DNA of 64,000 bases from Selaginella moellendorffii (Eukaryota; Plantae; Lycopodiophyta), in assembly GCF_000143415.4 (NCBI RefSeq), contig NW_003314272.1:55144-119143 (forward strand). The letters are read 5' to 3'. A model generated the notes under the pieces. It had not been told where the DNA came from. It saw only the letters and a program-made list of their open reading frames with translations, and searched no databases. Numbering within the stretch: position 1 is the first letter of the stretch; each line of letters begins with the position of its first letter. Shown piece after piece: positions 29,068-42,312 of the stretch. Position numbers and translations under genes: made by a program.

Positions 29068-31011
29068 ATGGGAGACGCGTCGGATCCCTTTGACAAGCTT
29101 CCAGATGAGGTCTACCAGCTCATCTTCCACGCGATCTGTGACTGCAAAAGCCTGGTACGCTGCATGGCAGTTTCCAGAGCATTCAAAGAACAATCCGAGC
29201 GTGTCTCGACACTCTGCATCGTTTGCCCGGGCCAGTTCACATCTTATGTTGATAAGCTGCAGCGGATTTTCATGATGGTGAGACGATTCCACAGCTTGGA
29301 AGCTCTCGTTGTTAGAGTTGGGCAACCGAAAGACGAGCCTCCCTCGTGGGCGAGGTGCATGAGATATGCAGAAATTGGATCGTTCGTGGAGAAGTTTATC
29401 TTCATGGCGGCCAAAATTGGCGAGTTTTCAGAGTTTGATTCAGCCTTGCGGGGTCACCCTGTCCACAGAAAAGAGCGGGAGAGCTCGTCAGAAGGCGAAG
29501 GTGAGGCCGTTAGGATGGACAGAGACAGCGTGACGAGCGGCGGGAACAGCTCGACAACTCGCAGTCCTTTGGACGAGGAGGAAAAGGAAGATGAGGATTG
29601 CTCTTGGCCGTTGTCTGACGAGCAGATTTATCCGCAGTTGATCCTGAGGCAAGTTGTGGCTCCCAGCAACGACGTGCTGAAGAGGATGGTGCCCGTTATA
29701 GTATTTGCTATTGTGCAAGGACTGGATGAATTTCGTGATTCAGTGCCAGCATTTGTTCACAAGTTTAAGAAGCTCAAAATGTTTCTACTTGTGGACATGC
29801 TAGAAAGTGTGACGGTTCTCATGCGCGAACACCATATTCAGCAAATTAGAATACGGCAGCAACAAGTGGACGACAGTAAGGACGTAAAAGGCAAGAGTGT
29901 GAATGCGGGTGAGGAGTGTAGCAGCGACTTGATGCAGAAAGGAAAGGAGTGGCTTGAAAGCGACGAAAACAGAGCTTGCAGCTCACGTCGTAAACAAGAT
30001 CAAGGGGAGAGCTCAGGAAGCCAAGGAAATTATGAGGACGAAGAAGATAACGAGGAGGAGCTGAGTCACAGTTCCGAGGGCTGTGCCACGACCCTGGAAG
30101 GAGGAGATAACCAGAGGACTCCCTTTGACGACGCATCGGAGACGTGGAGAAACTGCAAAGGGATTTGCATTCATGGACCGGGCGATAGCAGGGGCGAGCT
30201 CGCTTTCAAGTATCCATTTAAGCGAACTGGTAGAGGGACCAGAGACAACAGGTCTGTTCGAATTGGGAGCTACCGTAGGCGAGAACGCAGTGCAGAATGG
30301 ATGGATGAAAGCGTGAGGAGGCGGCAAGAAAGCAGACACTACAAAGGGCTCAGTTTAAGGAGGAGAGAAGAAAGCAGAGCGTTCAAGACGTGGAAGCTTG
30401 GAAAAAGAGAGCGAGAAAATGGTGACGGCGACGGGAGTTACAGCGCTCAAAGTGTACTGGAGTCTTCCTGTGCATCGTCTTCTTCCCACGCTGACAGTGG
30501 AAGCTACGCTTCTGGAGAGACTTCGGACGGGGTTAGCGCTTCCTTGGATCATCCTTTAGCGTCTTCATGTCCTGCCGAAGGGGCGACGCGGGATTATCAC
30601 ATGGGAGAGAGGTTATCACACGGGAACATGGAGGCATGGAGTGAAACGTGGAACGAGAGACTAGGACGCAGAGCTCGTGAGCTTCCGAGGGAGATGGGGG
30701 GCAATGAGAGTGCTACTGATGTCGGCAGGGAAGCCTTGAGACGTGAGAGGCTACGGGAGGGCGTCCGGAAGAGGCAAATGGAAATTGAAAGAGAAGCGCT
30801 GAGGTTTGATATCACGTTCTGGAGAGCCGATGAGGTTGTTGCTCGCAGCAACTACAGTCTCACGGACGTTTCAATGTGCATTGCAACACATGACGCTAGC
30901 CCACTGTCCATCTCCGAATCGAAGACTCTAGTGTGCTCAGCCCTTGCTGGCCCGCTCCTAGCCGCCACCATTGCTCATGTAAATGAACAAGCAAGTTTCC
31001 ATAACTTGTAA
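29068..31011 (+). CDS. F-box protein (At4g18380/At5g46170/AUF-like family) with a long low-complexity insertion; possible extra 5' exon at 28769-28944
   Basis: 647-aa ORF. The N-terminal DPFDKLPDEVYQLIFHAICDCKSLVRCMAVSRAF is an F-box, and family-like blocks flank the insertion. Confidence 0.8.
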   Translation: MGDASDPFDKLPDEVYQLIFHAICDCKSLVRCMAVSRAFKEQSERVSTLCIVCPGQFTSYVDKLQRIFMMVRRFHSLEALVVRVGQPKDEPPSWARCMRYAEIGSFVEKFIFMAAKIGEFSEFDSALRGHPVHRKERESSSEGEGEAVRMDRDSVTSGGNSSTTRSPLDEEEKEDEDCSWPLSDEQIYPQLILRQVVAPSNDVLKRMVPVIVFAIVQGLDEFRDSVPAFVHKFKKLKMFLLVDMLESVTVLMREHHIQQIRIRQQQVDDSKDVKGKSVNAGEECSSDLMQKGKEWLESDENRACSSRRKQDQGESSGSQGNYEDEEDNEEELSHSSEGCATTLEGGDNQRTPFDDASETWRNCKGICIHGPGDSRGELAFKYPFKRTGRGTRDNRSVRIGSYRRRERSAEWMDESVRRRQESRHYKGLSLRRREESRAFKTWKLGKRERENGDGDGSYSAQSVLESSCASSSSHADSGSYASGETSDGVSASLDHPLASSCPAEGATRDYHMGERLSHGNMEAWSETWNERLGRRARELPREMGGNESATDVGREALRRERLREGVRKRQMEIEREALRFDITFWRADEVVARSNYSLTDVSMCIATHDASPLSISESKTLVCSALAGPLLAATIAHVNEQASFHNL

Positions 31012-34645: not shown

Positions 34646-35029
34646 GTTCTTGTTCTTGCTCGACCTAAAACAAAGTAGTAGAACCCCGCGCTGCTTGTGC
34701 GTGACAAGTGGCATAGGACGTGGCAACAGGAGAAGTGGCTACAGCCTTTGTTTTCCTTTATTATAGAAACAAGGGGCAAAAAGGAAAAGGCAAAAAAGGT
34801 GGTATTCACAATTATAATATATTTTCCCCTTTCCAGCTCAACGAACACCTCCATGTATTTAGCCCCAAGTTAGCGGAATTGAGTCAAGCAGCAGATCTCG
34901 CTGTGCCGCGACCAAACGTCCTCCCTCGCTTCAATTGCCCATTGCCGCCGCCTCCTAATCCCCTCCTCCTCCGGTGCTCGATGCTGCGACAGGTCAATTG
35001 TGTTGCAGCCGCGGCAGATTGTATCAAGG

Positions 35030-36391
35030 ATGGGCCGCCACTCGTGTTGCCAGAAGCAGAAGCTCAAGAAGGGATTGTGGTCGCCAGAGGAGGATGAGAA
35101 GCTGGTCAGGTACATTACCAAGTATGGCCACGGCTGCTGGAGTGCGGTGCCAAAGCAAGCAGGTGCTCTTGTGAAACTGGAGAGAGAGAGAGAACGAGAG
35201 GCATTGACAAAATCTGGTTTCATGGTGGCTTGGCTTCCAGGGCTTCAGCGATGCGGGAAGAGCTGCCGGCTGAGATGGATCAACTACCTCAGGCCCGATC
35301 TGAAGCGAGGTGTCTTCTCCGCAACCGAGGAGAAGCTCATCATTGAGCTCCATGCTGTCCTCGGTAACAGGTGGTGCACCTTTCTCTTCCTAGTATGCAT
35401 GCATATATGCCAATTCGTTGCTCATTACGAGCGTTGCCACAGATGGTCTCAAATCGCCACACAGTTGCCCGGGAGAACAGACAACGAGATAAAAAACTAC
35501 TGGAACACTTGCATCAAGAAGAAGCTCAAGCAAATTGGCATCGATCCCAACACGCACAGGCCGCTGGATGAAGCGGGGCTGGCGGTGGCATCTACAGGTT
35601 CCGCATCGCCAGCCGCAAGCATGGACATGAACGTGAGTGTCGAGTGTAATTTGCATCACAGAACGACGACCTTGTACCCTTGCGCGTTTGAGGACATTCT
35701 TTTCAACCCCACTTCCACTACTCGATCCATTGGTGTTGGACGCCACCACCTGCTCAAGCTCCAAGCTCTCGAGGGAAGCAGCATCAGCAGCAGTAGCAGC
35801 AGCAGTAGTAACATTCACTTGACGGACTCTCTGGTGGAGAAATTCCTGGCGAGTGGGCTTGATCACACCAGGCAGCCATCTGCATCTTCCTACAGCTGTT
35901 ACGACTCTGCGCTCATTTCCTCGTCCTACGACAACGAGCTGCACATGTTGCAAGGGCATGGGCCGGGGGATCAACGCCAGCCAGACCCATGTCTCTTCTC
36001 CTTCCTTGCAGCGGCTGAGGAAGGATTTGGGATGGTCAGTAGCAGGGGGGGGCTGGCGTACTACGGCGACTCTTTCAACTCCGGGGAAGCAGTAGCTGCT
36101 GCAGCAGCAGGAGCTGGCAGCAACACGGCGAGCAGCAGTAGCGCTACAGCCACGGGGGGCGAGGAGGTGGAAGCGGATGAGCACAGCAATGTGGTCCAGT
36201 GGTGTGAGCTAATGCCGGTGTCGTTCGCGGTGCACGAGTTTGAAAAATGTCATGATCAGGAGGTGGCGTTGAAACAAGAGGATCCGGGGCAGAGCCTGTG
36301 CTGGTCACAGCAAGCTGCAATGGGCATGGGCGTGGGCATGTGCATGTCTCCGGAACTGGAGCGGATTGCAGCGGTCATCGATGAGATGTAA
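35030..36391 (+). CDS. R2R3-MYB transcription factor, MYB61/MYB55/MYB86-like N-terminus
   Basis: [48 protein letters not shown] and [28 protein letters not shown]. Introns at the canonical positions (35163-35240, 35371-35442). Confidence 0.95.
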
Positions 36392-36405
36392 TCCCCATTT
36401 CCTGT

Positions 36406-36445
36406 GGTGTGTGTGTGTGTGGGTGGTGTGTGCGTGTGTGTGTTT
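36406..36445. repeat. Imperfect (GT)n microsatellite
   Basis: Seen directly in the sequence. Confidence 0.8.
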
Positions 36446-36767
36446 GTATTTTTGGTATCTAAGGTCTATAGAAAGTGTGACAATGATACGAGGAATGTTG
36501 ACCTGGCCGCAGGAATAGGATGTTGCCGTCCCTGACTCCTGCCCAACAAGCCAAATCCGCGAGAATGTTGGCATGATGGTGGCACTAACAGAGGCGGGAT
36601 CCTTGTTTGTTGCCGTGCGGTGGAATGGACGGATGGGGCAAGGACGTGACAAGCCCCTCTTTGTTGTTTCTTGTGTCGCGCCCAGCAAGCGAAACAATGC
36701 GAGGAGCGACTTCCTAAGCTCCCGACCTCGCTTGTTCCGTGCCTCACGCTCTGGGCAGGGCTGAATC

Positions 36768-39700
36768 ATGGCGACGCAACCGCGCAATGAGGCGCTGGAG
36801 CAGCGAATTGCGGCGGAGGTAATCGATCGCTTAGAAAATCCACGGCATGTAACAATCTCTCTTTCCGTGACGAATCCAATTCAGGGAAGCGAGCAAGCAT
36901 ATCATGCCATTGTCGTCCCAGCGTCAGATACGGGTGGTCCTGCTACCGGTAGAAGCCGTGTCCATCCACTTGCTTACATGGAAGGTAATGGCCGTTTCCT
37001 AGCCGCTGTGCGTGAAGGAGACATGCGTGTCTATGTGGTGACAGAGGCACAGGCATCATATGGTTATGGTACCGTATCTTGGAAGAAGAGGTTGGAAGGC
37101 TGGAGGCTACGAAAAGAAAGATATGAGATGATGACGGCTGAACCTTCTCATGCCAAAGCTGATGATGCCAGCGCCGAGAGCTTCTACTCACCAGACTTAC
37201 CAGTGTATGCTTTACACTCCAATTCTGTGGCTATCAGCAGCATTTGTTGCTACTTGCAGAATGGACCAGGCAAGGCAACCGCTGTCGAGGAAGGTTCCTA
37301 TTGCTTCGAGTTTGGTCAACCCTTACAGGATGGTCATTGTCATTCGGCTCGTAGCTCTGGCTTTCTACTTCCGCTTCCGCATTCTAAATCCAGTTGGCAA
37401 TGCATATGGCTTGTGGCTGACATCAGTTGTGTGCGAGATTTGGTTCGCTCTCTCTTGGATAGCTCATCAACTTCCTAAATGGATCCCAGTTGTAAGGGAG
37501 ACATACCTTGACCGCCTTGCCCTCAGGTATGTAAGACGATATCAGAGGTTTTGCTACGACTGATTGATGATTAAAAGGTATGAGAAACAAGGGCAGGTGT
37601 GCGGCCTGCCCGCGATAGATGTCTTGGTTGCGACGGAGGACCCGTTTAAGGACCCTCTTCTGGCCACAACCAACGCCGTCCTTTCCGTCCTCTCTGTTGA
37701 TTACCCCGTCGAAAAGCTCTCGTGCTATGTCTCGGACGACAGCGCTGCCATGCTTACGTTTGAAGGCCTTTGCGAGACATCGGAATTTGCGAGAAAATGG
37801 GTGCCTTTCTGCAGGAGCTTTAACGTCGAGCCTCGTGCACCCCAAGTCTATTTTGCCCAGAAGATTGACTATGCCGACACCAAGTTTCAATCGTCTTTCG
37901 TCAAGGAGAGGCGGGCAATGAAGGCATGCATACTTTTTTTTTTTCATCTTTTGTTCTGGCTGAGTAATATTTCAGAGAGAGTACGAAGAGTTCAAAGTGA
38001 GAATCAATGCGTTGGTGGAGAAGGCTGCCAAAGTTCCTGAAGAAGGCTGGAGCATGCAAAATGGAACCCCATGGCCAGGAACCAACAGCCGAGACCATCC
38101 AGGCATGATACAGGTAATTATTATTGGAAAGAGCAGGTGTCTAGTTAAACTTGTTCGCAAATTCACAGGTGTTTCTTGGTCACAGCGGGGGACACGACAG
38201 CGACGGCAATGAGCTACCACGTCTTGTGTACGTCTCCCGAGAGAGACGCCCCGGATTCAAGCATCACAACAAGGCGGGAGCAATGAATGCTTTGGTGAAA
38301 CCAATGTTTAAACTGTTTATATCACTCACTGATCACGCCTTGCTCCGTAAACAGGTGCGTGTGTCCGCCGTCTTGACAAACGCCCCGTATGTTGTGGACG
38401 TCAACTGCGCTGATTATGTCAACAACAGCCGCGCACTGCGTGAGGCAATGTGTCTTATGATGGACACAATGGTTGGGAAAAAGGCGTGCTTTGTGCAGTT
38501 TCCACAGAGATTCGGCAGCCATGACAATGAGCATGCTGTCTTCTTTGACGTGAGTTGGCGACCAGTTTCTCTTGTCTGGATTTCTGAGTTGCGCACGACT
38601 GTGTGACAGATAAATCTCAAAGGCTTGGATGGTATCCAGGGTCCCATGTATGTCGGGAGGGGATGCGTTTTCCGGCGACAGGCACTGTACGGCGTGTGTG
38701 CACCTGTGAGCGGCAAAGCGCGGCAGCGCTTGCATTGCCGGGTGGGGGACGAAGAAGGTGCGTGCCATTTTGCAAGTTTTTAGCACCTTATACAAACATT
38801 TGGACGCAGGTGACGAAAAAAGGTTGGAGAAGCGTTACGGGCAGTCACCGGTCTTTGTCGCGTCAACGAGGCAAGAAGCAGTTCCTAGTAGCCCCAACGA
38901 TGACGGTAGCCTATCGACGTCGGCTCTTCTGAAAGAGGCAATTCACGTGATCAGCTGCGGCTACGAGGACAAGAGCGAGTGGGGGAAAGAGGTAAAGAGA
39001 GATGAAAATTGCTGGGAAAAGGCCTGACGCTTGCTTGGTCACAGGTTGGTTGGATTTACGGGGGAGGCGATTGTGTGGCCGGCATGTTGATGCATGCCAG
39101 GGGCTGGCGCTCCACATACTGCATGCCTCAGCGACCAGCATTCAAGAGTTGCGGGCTGCTGGACGTGGCAGGGAAATTGGAACAATTGCTGGTGCAATCT
39201 ATGGCCAGCATGGAGCTTGTGTTGAGCAAGCACTGTCCACTGTGGTATGGCTATGGTGGTCGCCTCAAGCTGCTTCAGCGGCTGGCCTACCTCAGCAGCG
39301 CTTTCCATCCTCTAAACTCCATTCCACTCGTCGTCTATACCACACTGCCTGCCGTGTGCCTCTTGACTGGCAAGTTCATCCTTCCCGAGGTACGTGTGTC
39401 ACGTTTGTGCCATTGTTTCATCCAACGCTCGCATGCAGTTGGGAAGGTCAGCCAGCCTGTTGCTCGTGACAGTGCTCTTGTGCATTGGTGCAAGTGCCAT
39501 CCTGGAGATGCGGTGGAGTGGAGTGAGCGCGGAGGAATGGTGGCAAGACGAGCAGTTGTGGGTGATTGGAGGCGTCTCGTCGCACTTGGTTGCATTGTTC
39601 CAAGGCCTCGTCAAGGTTTTGGGTGGTGGTGACAGTTTCAGCTTTGAAGCCCCTACCTGCGTTTGTATCTCAACCGGAACCGGATGGAGCAGCCTTCTCG

Positions 39701-40005
39701 TCCCTCCCTTGACAATTCTGGTGATCAATATGGTAGGGGTGGCAGCTGGGCTGTCAGATACACTCAATAACGGCTACGAGTCATGGGGGCCACTGCTTGG
39801 CAAACTTCTGTTTGCCTTTTGGGTGATCTCGCACCTCTACCCATTCCTTAAGGCTACCATGGCTAGGCACAACCGCACACCCACAATCGTCATCGTATGG
39901 TCCATTCTGTTAGCATCCATCTTTTCGCTTCTCTGGGTGCGAATTAACCCTTTCATTCCCAAGCTGGTTGGTCCCAGCTTGGAGGAGTGCGGCATTAACT
40001 GCTGA
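36768..40005 (+). CDS. Cellulose synthase (CesA)-like protein lacking the RING domain, with degenerate catalytic motifs
   Basis: [82 protein letters not shown] and [28 protein letters not shown]. Confidence 0.9.
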
Positions 40006-40363
40006 CTGCGCTTCACGCAGGGGTTTGCATAAGGTTGGAGAAGCGTGGCTATGGTCTCTTCCTGTAGCTCCTCCTGTGAAGAAAAACAAACCAGAGGGCA
40101 CCTCGAGCTGCCGGGGCGATGGATTGAACGGGCGCTGTAAGATGCAACTTTTGTGCATTTCGTACGGGTAGCAATAAGGACGATCTGTGTCCATCGTGAG
40201 GCCTCCTCAGCTTTGTCTCCTGCTGGTTGTGTTACGGTATATCCAAGCGAGTGGTAACACCGGTAGCGTAGTAAGATTTTTGTGCGCAAGCCATGGCTTG
40301 AGACATTGGCGCAGCTTCAGGATGCCGCGGCATTGCAACCCTTTTACCCTAAAACTCCATGCA

Positions 40364-42312
40364 ATGGAGGGGGGCTCGGAGGAGTCATCAGAGTTGGCGC
40401 AGCCCCTGCAGCTCGGCTTGGATGGCGATGGAGGCGAGGTGGAGGACTGTTTTGGTCCTGCAACAGAGGTGGCGTGGCAACCGAATGCGGCGCTGTGCCG
40501 AAACTTTGACAAGGTACGTGGTGGTGCCCGAGGACTCTGCTTTGATATCCGGTGCAGTTGAAGCTCCTTTACATCCAGTCCACGCAGCTCAATTTACGAC
40601 TGCAAGCGACATGTGGAGTGCTGAGGAAAGAAAAGGTAAGGCGCTTTACCTCCTTTCATGCTCCCCGCTGTCTATAGGAAGAGATGGAGAAGAGATACTT
40701 CGCTGCTGCGGGTTTTGGAAGCGAGAGCGACAGGTGTACAGTTGCTCATTCTGTTTATTTACCTCCATCTGTGTCGTGTGTCAAGGCGTCCAGAAGATGC
40801 TGAATTGCAAGCCAGTCCGTCGCCTTTGCCCACATGCACTCGCTGACGTTTGTGTGTGTGCAGACGAGCGGAGGTTAACTCAACTTGAAGCATCCAAGAG
40901 AGCTCTCGAGGGGATGTAAGTCTCTTGCTCAATTGTTTCTCATGTCACTTTTTTGTGCTCCAGCAACGAGCCGGGAGGAATAGTAGGAGTCTGACCTGTA
41001 TCCTATGCGCGCTGTGCTGTTAACACTAGTGTCAATCATGGCAGTGTAAGCATTGCGACGGTAGAGTGTCCGTTATTTCCGGGCTGGAGCAAGCGGTGCA
41101 GCAGTTGAAGTAATATCGCCCCTCGTCTGGTGAAAGTCTCACTCGTTTTTCCAGGGACCGTTTACACACATTCGAAGTGAAACACGACAACGTCTCGCAA
41201 ATGGGAAAGTAACGGTGACGCAATCACGGACCGGTTCTCACATTGTGTGATACCAGGCAGGTGCAGGAAATGGAAGAGACCAGCGATGCGCTAGCCAGAG
41301 CTTGCCGTGAGGAGCAGAGGCAGAGGCAGATGTGTAAAGCCTTGGAAAGCGAAGTATGTGATCTTCGGGCTCTGCTTCGTGCCGTGGAGCAAACCAGTGC
41401 TGAAGCGGAACTCAGGCACCTGAACACAGTCAGTGCCCTCATAAAGGTGGTGTACACACGTGGAGCCTGTCACCCTCTTTGACTGCCTGAAGGATGCAGG
41501 AGAAAGAGGGCCTACATGAGGAGGTTGAAAACTTCCAGCACAAATGTAATGTGCTAGATGCAAGCTTTGGCAAAGTGCAAGAGGAGCTTCTGGACGTGAG
41601 CACGAGGCTAGAGGAATCACGAGCCAAGCTGGGAGAAGCCGTCTGTAAGAATAACGACTCACAGGCCGAAGCAGCTAGCTACAGGTGGACTTTTCCTTGA
41701 TTTGTTCCAATATTTCAACGTTTTAGAGCAGAGTTGAACGAGATGAACTCCAAAGAAAGCTAGATTCGGCGAGAGGAGACATGGCAGAACTTGCGAAGTT
41801 CAGAGAACTGGATCATGTAAATACCGTGGAACAAGTGAAAGTACGTCTTGTGGCTCGGAGGTGCCTTTTTAAAAAACTTACATGCAGAGAAGCTGCGAGT
41901 CGTCGTGGCGGACGCAAGAGAACTCTTCTCAACAGAGGATATCCTCTTTGCGCCGCAAGATACATCAGCTGCAAGCGGTAATCCTTGTGACAGAGTTGGT
42001 CTATTTTGCAACTCTGACATCAGGTGTTTGCAGAAAGTCAAGCAGGCACACAAGCAAATGGCGAGGCTAACTTTTGATAGGAACGAGCTCCTGATCCAGC
42101 AGCAGGAGTACGAAGCGCAACTAAGTGCATTGCGACAGGTACCCTCTTGGCTACAAGTTTGCCTGCTGAAATGCTCCCGTTGCAGCACTCCTCCCGCATT
42201 CGAGCACCAGGCTTTCACCTCTCCTCACCCAAATCGAAACTCATCAGTGCGGAAATTAGTCAGGTTGCAGCACGTCAAGCTAGATACTTTGCCGATACCG
42301 CGCTGTGAATAA
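40364..42312 (+). CDS. Uncharacterised multi-exon coiled-coil protein (3' end uncertain)
   Basis: Spliceable exons with heptad-like E/Q/L/K-rich segments (VQEMEETSDALARACREEQRQRQ; EKEGLHEEVENFQHKCNVL). Confidence 0.55.

Follow-up and report, generated by a model that had tools for sequence, protein, structure and literature searches.

Cellulose synthase complexes are thought, to our knowledge, to be built only from catalytic cellulose synthase (CesA) isoforms, and the number of glucan chains made per complex, and what sets it, are still debated. Within each isoform the DxD, TED and QxxRW motifs and the gating loop bind metal and uridine diphosphate (UDP), form the catalytic base region and position both acceptor and donor. 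Here we describe a CesA-derived gene on the plus strand at positions 36768-40005 of a 64,000-nucleotide stretch of the genome of the lycophyte Selaginella moellendorffii (contig NW_003314272.1, positions 55,144 to 119,143; this whole stretch is the window, to which unprefixed positions refer). We consider it reasonably likely that this is a maintained, protein-coding lycophyte CesA paralogue that has lost its catalytic residues and acts through the scaffold it retains; it is probably no dead gene but a non-catalytic relative of the enzyme.

The structural roles of the non-catalytic parts of CesA have been described in soybean, where subunits trimerise through the plant-conserved region (P-CR) and trimers contact one another through the class-specific region (PMC12077881). 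A RING-less, motif-poor kind of CESA has also been noted before, in the grasses. The clade of BdCESA10, OsCESA11 and Sb10g023430, with OsCESA10, is made up of short proteins that are without the RING finger, part of the hypervariable region and parts of the D,D,D,QxxRW signature; it is present in all sequenced grasses, is uncharacterised and has been termed grass-specific, and OsCESA11 is weakly expressed (PMC3847494, PMC3022907). For S. moellendorffii, Harholt et al. (2012) listed a fifth CesA, SmCESA5 (Joint Genome Institute (JGI) 235890, XP_002989886), as "not included in the tree", gave no motif, expression or selection analysis for it and mentioned two pseudogenes in an earlier catalogue (PMC3342304). 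Later studies count four Selaginella CESAs (PMC13016765). In the full-text literature we found SmCESA5 only in the 2012 listing, and no paper on a CesA pseudoenzyme.

The gene described here is very likely SmCESA5. The locus is 100% identical to GL377576.1:86121-101148 (GCA_000143415.2), where the annotated product is EFJ29751.1 (UniProt D8RDI5), a "family 2 glycosyltransferase" of 844 amino acids. A second copy, EFJ08899.1, lies on GL377667.1 with the same gene order; the assembly is heterozygous, and this copy belongs to its other haplotype. The sum of the old XP and EFJ accessions is nearly constant across three pairs, and this rule puts XP_002989886 at EFJ08899.1, the sole CesA-like gene called in the 15-kb GL377667.1 stretch examined; the identification therefore comes from accession arithmetic and not from the XP_002989886 record. 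The initial annotation of the window, made from the sequence alone, had left it open whether the paralogue was already described: it is annotated and was very likely listed in 2012, although that listing came without analysis. What is new is the evidence for selection, spliced expression from both alleles, a corrected gene model and a position-by-position parallel with the grass proteins, so the advance is one of evidence and framing, with no new class of molecule.

We checked the catalytic motifs in alignments to solved CesA structures and in an alignment of 34 canonical land-plant CesAs, and each alteration read from the sequence in the initial annotation was recovered. SDDG is changed to SDDS (37732-37743), and NLDCDHY to DVNCADY (38397-38417), replacing both Asp residues of DxD (N-C-A). 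GSVTEDILTG has become GG--GDCVAG (39057-39083), so that TED reads "GD" after a two-residue deletion; the Asp that was suspected to remain is present and aligns with the catalytic base. QVLRW is now QLLVQ (39183-39197), so that its Arg and Trp are lost; in the gating loop, FTVTSK is replaced by FSFEAP (39637-39654). VGTG and HKKAGA have likewise changed, to VGRG and HNKAGA. The catalytic remnants are thus the two Asp residues in DDG, the Asp at the position of the TED base and the Gln of QxxRW. Such remnants, together with an otherwise well conserved glycosyltransferase (GT) core and the purifying selection on the coding sequence (CDS) described below, might suit a still-active glycosyltransferase of altered chemistry (metal-independent, or with another donor or product). 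We regard this as highly unlikely, given that both DxD Asp and the QxxRW Arg and Trp have gone, the TED finger helix is two residues shorter, the QRFDGID...RYANRN loop is short by six residues and the gating loop FxVTxK is unrecognisable, all these elements being invariant in the active relatives aligned (canonical CesAs, CslD3 and the Chara and Closterium CesAs).

Loss of conservation is concentrated at the active site, as first proposed. There are 418 invariant columns in the 34 canonical CesAs, 326 of which (78%) are kept in the CesA-like protein. Across the five signatures (DDG, DxD, TED, QxxRW and FxVTxK), 8 of 21 invariant positions are kept, against 318 of 397 elsewhere (Fisher p=6e-5), and changed positions are clustered, with 41 adjacent pairs compared with 20 ± 3.5 expected (permutation p<5e-5). 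The excess loss at catalytic elements is real and exceeds chance. By segment, invariant positions are kept at 45/69 in the segment with TED and QxxRW, 40/47 in the P-CR and 25/29 across the first two transmembrane (TM) helices, TM1-TM2. The retained scaffold comprises two N-terminal and five C-terminal TM helices (the last of them identical to that of SmCESA1), the core of the GT fold, the P-CR and the C-terminal cysteines (CGINC, within ECGINC); the TM helices, P-CR and cysteines had been described as close to canonical from the outset. The RRAMK/R motif of the P-CR, corresponding to R449, K452 and R453 of GmCesA6 (8VI0 numbering; PMC12077881), is intact, and every indel relative to canonical CesAs is in frame.

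Two whole regions are reduced or absent. The N-terminal RING finger, which takes up roughly residues 1-140 in canonical CesAs, is missing, and a tblastn search with that part of SmCESA1 (residues 1-140) gave no match in the window, which thus has no RING remnant. In Pfam the protein has only PF03552 (Cellulose_synt, 917 bits), with neither zf-UDP (PF14569) nor Glyco_trans_2_3, whereas SmCESA1 has all three domains, zf-UDP scoring 153 bits. The class-specific region is about 25 residues long (ALYG to YGQSPVF) as against about 80-100 in canonical CesAs. Compared with the canonical proteins (SmCESA1-4; PttCesA8, 6WLB; GhCesA7, 7D5K; GmCesA1/3/6, 8VHT/8VHZ/8VI0), the gene product therefore has in common PF03552, the P-CR, the TM helices and CGINC, and differs in its missing RING, its short class-specific region and its disrupted DxD, TED, QxxRW and FxVTxK motifs. 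It is 60-67% identical to canonical CesAs, SmCESA1 being the closest (66.8%), and single exons match solved CesAs at E values of 1e-42 to 1e-73. In the tree it is placed within the crown of land-plant CesAs and forms a polytomy with SmCESA1 and two CesAs from Diphasiastrum; its branch is tenfold longer than that of SmCESA1.

The structure of the gene was established from public RNA runs (coded X1, X5, X11 and X12; contigs and reads) aligned to window positions 36460-40400. X11 and X12 are raw reads and the Logan contigs come from two other studies, making three studies in all. A 10-exon, 916-amino-acid model, built from the open reading frame (ORF) listing and direct reading, was replaced once the RNA joints were seen, as these revealed two extra in-frame introns (36819-36884 and 36985-37044) in what had seemed a single first exon. 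The model supported by RNA comprises 12 exons totalling 2625 nt (874 codons) and introns of 49-66 nt, and the frame is open from 36768 to 40005; the uninterrupted spliced frame first reported thus holds, though with this revised exon count and length. The features are as follows, all on the plus strand.

36620..36767 (+): 5' untranslated region (UTR), minimum extent; an X5 contig follows the genome without a break from 36620 into the CDS.
36768..36818 (+): exon 1, 17 codons starting with the ATG; joint 36818 to 36885, GT..AG, in an X5 contig.
36885..36984 (+): exon 2; X5 contig joints at either end.
37045..37204 (+): exon 3, conserved N-terminal segment (YGYG..W), aligned with canonical CesAs; joints 36984 to 37045 and 37204 to 37260.
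37260..37526 (+): exon 4, ARQPLSRK segment, TM1 and TM2 (25/29 invariant positions kept); joint 37526 to 37578 in an X1 contig and three X12 reads.
37578..37923 (+): exon 5, first part of the GT core, DDG to DDS, start of the P-CR; E 6.5e-48 to PttCesA8 (6WLB).
37924..37975 (+): GC-AG intron, 52 nt; GC donor in both alleles, keeping the invariant VKERRAMK/REYEEFK.
37976..38113 (+): exon 6, second helix of the P-CR; E 4.5e-23 to the rice CesA8 P-CR crystal structure 5JNP; joint 38113 to 38169.
38169..38294 (+): exon 7, HHNKAGAMN; joint 38294 to 38355 in X1, X5 and X11.
38355..38549 (+): exon 8, DxD to NCA (38403-38411) and a six-residue deletion (38505-38534), from alignment to 8VI0; joint 38549 to 38610.
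38610..38757 (+): exon 9, VGRGC and the start of the shrunken class-specific region, from alignment; joint 38757 to 38810 in X5 and X12, with a loose end in X1.
38810..38991 (+): exon 10, last part of what remains of the class-specific region, from alignment with canonical CesAs.
39045..39389 (+): exon 11, TED to GD (39057-39083), QxxRW to QLLVQ (39183-39197) and TM3; E 5.9e-42 to 8VHT; an X1 loose end matches its 3' end as joined to 39439.
39439..40005 (+): exon 12, TM4-TM7, gating loop FSFEAP (39637-39654), C-terminal ECGINC and stop; E 2.2e-73 to GhCesA7 (7D5K).

GT..AG joints were seen at 8 of the 11 introns, and a ninth (exon 11-12) is represented by the loose end, a 16-letter match. Because the 5' UTR is colinear with the genome and an in-frame TGA (36762-36764) stands two codons ahead of the ATG, no upstream RING exon is spliced on. 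Only use of the GC donor lets exon 5 end in VKERRAMK, and an X1 contig that aligns from 37974, with five unmatched letters before, is what an upstream exon with AG at its end would give. The JGI models EFJ29751.1 and EFJ08899.1 (36978-38780) are mis-spliced when set against the RNA. Both start at an ATG within intron 2, drop VKERRAMK, so avoiding the GC donor, and add ACHFAS from intron 9; save for these three spots EFJ29751.1 matches the 12-exon model throughout. EFJ08899.1 additionally keeps the 60-nt intron 8, which is free of stops in that allele because of an A>G change at 38606.

The gene is transcribed at a low level from both alleles and is correctly spliced. X11 and X12 each hold about 10 reads at ≥95% identity per 9.2 million reads, or some 0.5 reads per kilobase per million (RPKM). 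Spliced pieces occur among the Logan contigs at word depths of 2-7, some carrying the reference allele and others the variants of the second allele, of which those at 36691, 36751, 36782 and 36939 occur together in a single spliced contig, which shows transcription of either allele. A strongly expressed canonical CesA cross-maps to the gene and accounts for the patches of high depth at 37974-38010, 38956-38991, 39117-39259 and 39496-39518.

Near-identical read pairs mostly have the sense orientation that a stranded library should give. One or two pairs each over 36856-37251 (X12, exons 2-3) and 39760-40023 (X11, end of exon 12) are of the opposite strand, and could be antisense transcription, DNA carry-over or noise.

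Comparison of the two haplotype alleles indicates that the CDS is currently under purifying selection within this one species. The second allele (GL377667.1, L002:5324-9447) is intact and encodes 881 amino acids on the same exon model, and all 22 splice-site dinucleotides are the same in both. Within exons the alleles differ by one indel only, a tandem duplication of 21 nt that keeps the frame (after 38893; exon 10, second allele), whilst the flanks carry indels of 1, 10 and 13 nt. Exons differ at 22 of 2625 positions (0.84%) compared with 32 of 1476 (2.2%) in non-coding DNA (p=5e-4), and of the 22 exonic substitutions 13 are synonymous and 9 non-synonymous, where neutrality predicts 74% non-synonymous (binomial p=9e-4). 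Non-synonymous divergence (dN) is 0.0045 and synonymous divergence (dS) 0.022, the latter equal to non-coding divergence, giving a dN/dS of 0.21-0.25 by four methods. On a longer timescale, neutral simulation on the gene's own CDS generated 9-14 stops at 20-30% amino-acid divergence, with a probability of none of 1e-4 to 1e-6; the gene has no stop despite a branch of its own of 1.3 substitutions per site (SmCESA1: 0.12). With intact alleles, low dN/dS, no stops and in-frame indels, a neutrally drifting duplicate, whether long-standing or recent, is therefore unlikely.

The duplicated exon 10 segment is an NDDGSLS repeat that lies within a six-residue insertion peculiar to this gene relative to canonical CesAs, and it appears to be growing by repeat slippage.

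How might such a protein act? After duplication, the loss of the RING, of most of the class-specific region and of the residues that bind UDP-glucose, metal and acceptor would have left a CesA-like protein which, judged from its sequence, is predicted to be unable to polymerise glucan. As the P-CR is conserved, with RRAMK/R intact, trimerisation with itself or with SmCESA1-4 could still occur. Most likely it would serve as a silent protomer, binding its own kind or the catalytic SmCESA1-4 by way of the P-CR and membrane domain; fewer chains might then be made, or assembly, trafficking or turnover might change, in the few cells that express it. Bridging trimers into a rosette would be less likely, since the class-specific region (and the RING) is missing. 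Of the two putative roles first proposed, rosette subunit and dominant-negative modulator, the same absence speaks against ordinary entry into rosettes. A silent or capping protomer and a separate role of the CesA scaffold are thus both candidate modes of action.

Several observations weigh against a maintained scaffold protein of this kind. The two missing regions, RING and class-specific region, are parts that canonical CesAs use for self-association and trimer-trimer contact (PMC12077881). Transcript abundance, at about 0.5 RPKM, is at least 100-fold under that of the cross-mapping canonical paralogue in the same runs, and the product is known at the RNA level only. No full joint was seen for the introns at 37924-37975 (GC-AG) and 38992-39044 (exon 10-11), and two contigs are unspliced at introns 9 and 10, which may be pre-mRNA or DNA carry-over. 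Constraint is relaxed generally, as 20% of the invariant positions outside the motifs have changed too. Only 22 substitutions between the alleles underlie the selection test. The newer RefSeq XP_024 accessions, present for SmCESA1-3, were not seen for this gene, and NCBI's later annotation may perhaps not call it as a protein. Finally, no orthologue was found in other species in the collections searched, which hold few lycophyte proteins, and hence there is no direct sign of long-term retention. Queries with exon 12 against cluster representatives, and against proteins limited to 104-329 amino acids, returned only canonical CesA fragments, at most 66% identical, and owing to the length limit and sparse sampling are uninformative on orthologues. 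A composite query (a distant CslD-like scaffold with five exon pieces), whose scores are a technical workaround and not ordinary homology scores, recovered the annotated protein and no intermediate-scoring orthologue.

Some of these points would be accounted for were the gene an expressed but decaying duplicate, that is, a pseudogene whose frame is still open by chance, whose transcripts are noise and whose protein function has not been kept. Very low expression, unspliced contigs, the long branch, the losses of RING, class-specific region and catalytic motifs and the wider erosion of invariant positions all fit such decay, as do the omission of SmCESA5 from the 2012 tree, the pseudogenes of the earlier catalogue and the later counts of four CESAs. 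Nonetheless we judge decay improbable. Between two intact alleles dN/dS is nowhere near 1, exon divergence is well under half that of flanking and intronic DNA, the single exonic indel is in frame where those of the flanks are not, no splice-site dinucleotide has changed and the stops predicted by neutral simulation are absent. The second allele carries no frameshift and spliced transcripts are found in three studies, and together with the motif-focused loss these results support the original preference for a retained non-catalytic role over random decay.

A maintained protein could also work wholly outside cellulose synthase complexes (as a membrane channel, or in a receptor-like or trafficking role) and not assemble with SmCESA1-4 at all. 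Purifying selection on an intact scaffold would be expected here as well, the regions used in CesA-CesA contacts (PMC12077881) are missing, and expression is so far below that of canonical CesAs, by at least two orders of magnitude, that stoichiometric partnership is unlikely. Against this, the P-CR retains most of its invariant positions, including the axis Arg and Lys residues, and the identity of the last TM helix with that of SmCESA1 is what would be expected if CesA contacts still matter. We also know of no other function for the CesA fold, and consider a role outside the complex unlikely. If instead the protein is a maintained CesA that joins its relatives, with a trimerisation domain and membrane body but without catalysis, it would offer a natural probe for the tolerance of complexes to silent protomers, and for the capacities of the P-CR and membrane helices once RING and class-specific region are gone. 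The finding also alters the Selaginella CESA count, usually given as four with the fifth ignored.

The closest parallel lies in the grass clade, which we compared through rice OsCESA11 and its O. glaberrima orthologue. Like the Selaginella protein (SmCESA5, on the identification given above), OsCESA11 has no RING, is shortened by deletions in both the TED and the QRFDGID...RYANRN loops, no longer has QxxRW or FxVTxK and shows PF03552 alone in Pfam; unlike SmCESA5, it still has DCD, and its class-specific region is longer. Of the 418 invariant positions, 56 are changed in both (odds ratio (OR) 4.7, p=3e-10), with identical replacements at several sites (e.g. S358A, S777G and T958E, poplar numbering), whereas no comparable overlap with SmCESA5 is seen for CslD3, Chara and Closterium, which are divergent but active (OR close to 1). 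In an LG+G4 tree SmCESA5 and OsCESA11 pair with a Shimodaira-Hasegawa-like approximate likelihood-ratio (SH-aLRT) support of 93, a grouping flagged as long branches meeting. When OsCESA11 is removed SmCESA5 groups with the lycophyte CesAs, and with both present an approximately unbiased (AU) test does not reject lycophyte placement (p=0.25). The tree pairing was accordingly dropped as proof of orthology: convergence is a better reading than ancient shared origin, and SmCESA5 and the grass clade most likely arose independently.

This leads us to suggest, tentatively and as a possibility we hold to be doubtful, that land plants evolved a dedicated non-catalytic CesA at least twice, in a lycophyte and in grasses, and by the same route, producing silent protomers that join or cap trimers and tune chain number, assembly or turnover in specific cells. 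Along the shared route the RING, QxxRW and the gating loop would have disappeared, and the TED finger helix and QRFDGID loop would have become shorter, with the P-CR and TM helices being kept. Because both have lost constraint at the same positions, the fifth Selaginella gene is linked to the unexplained grass CESA10/OsCESA11 clade, and one testable hypothesis spans the two.

Elsewhere in the window, a multi-exon R2R3-MYB gene lies upstream on the same strand (35000-36391, +). Its 429-amino-acid product has two Myb_DNA-binding domains, and the gene ends approximately 370 bp before the ATG of the CesA-like gene, with a (TG)n microsatellite between them at about 36400-36450. On the downstream side, X11 and X12 reads match only some 40 nt at 40280-40320 and continue into unrelated sequence on either side, so that this looks like a short element common to other transcripts; the next annotated gene (about 40359-42308, 399 amino acids, no Pfam domain) begins just beyond it. 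Exact look-ups of two neighbouring long ORFs, which differ from the annotated products, gave no match. Further upstream, a 647-amino-acid open frame (29068-31011, +) has an N-terminal F-box-like domain. Its relatives, of 850-1050 amino acids and with no further Pfam domain, are found in Diphasiastrum, ferns, mosses and Ginkgo, and it appears to belong to a conserved, unnamed land-plant F-box family.

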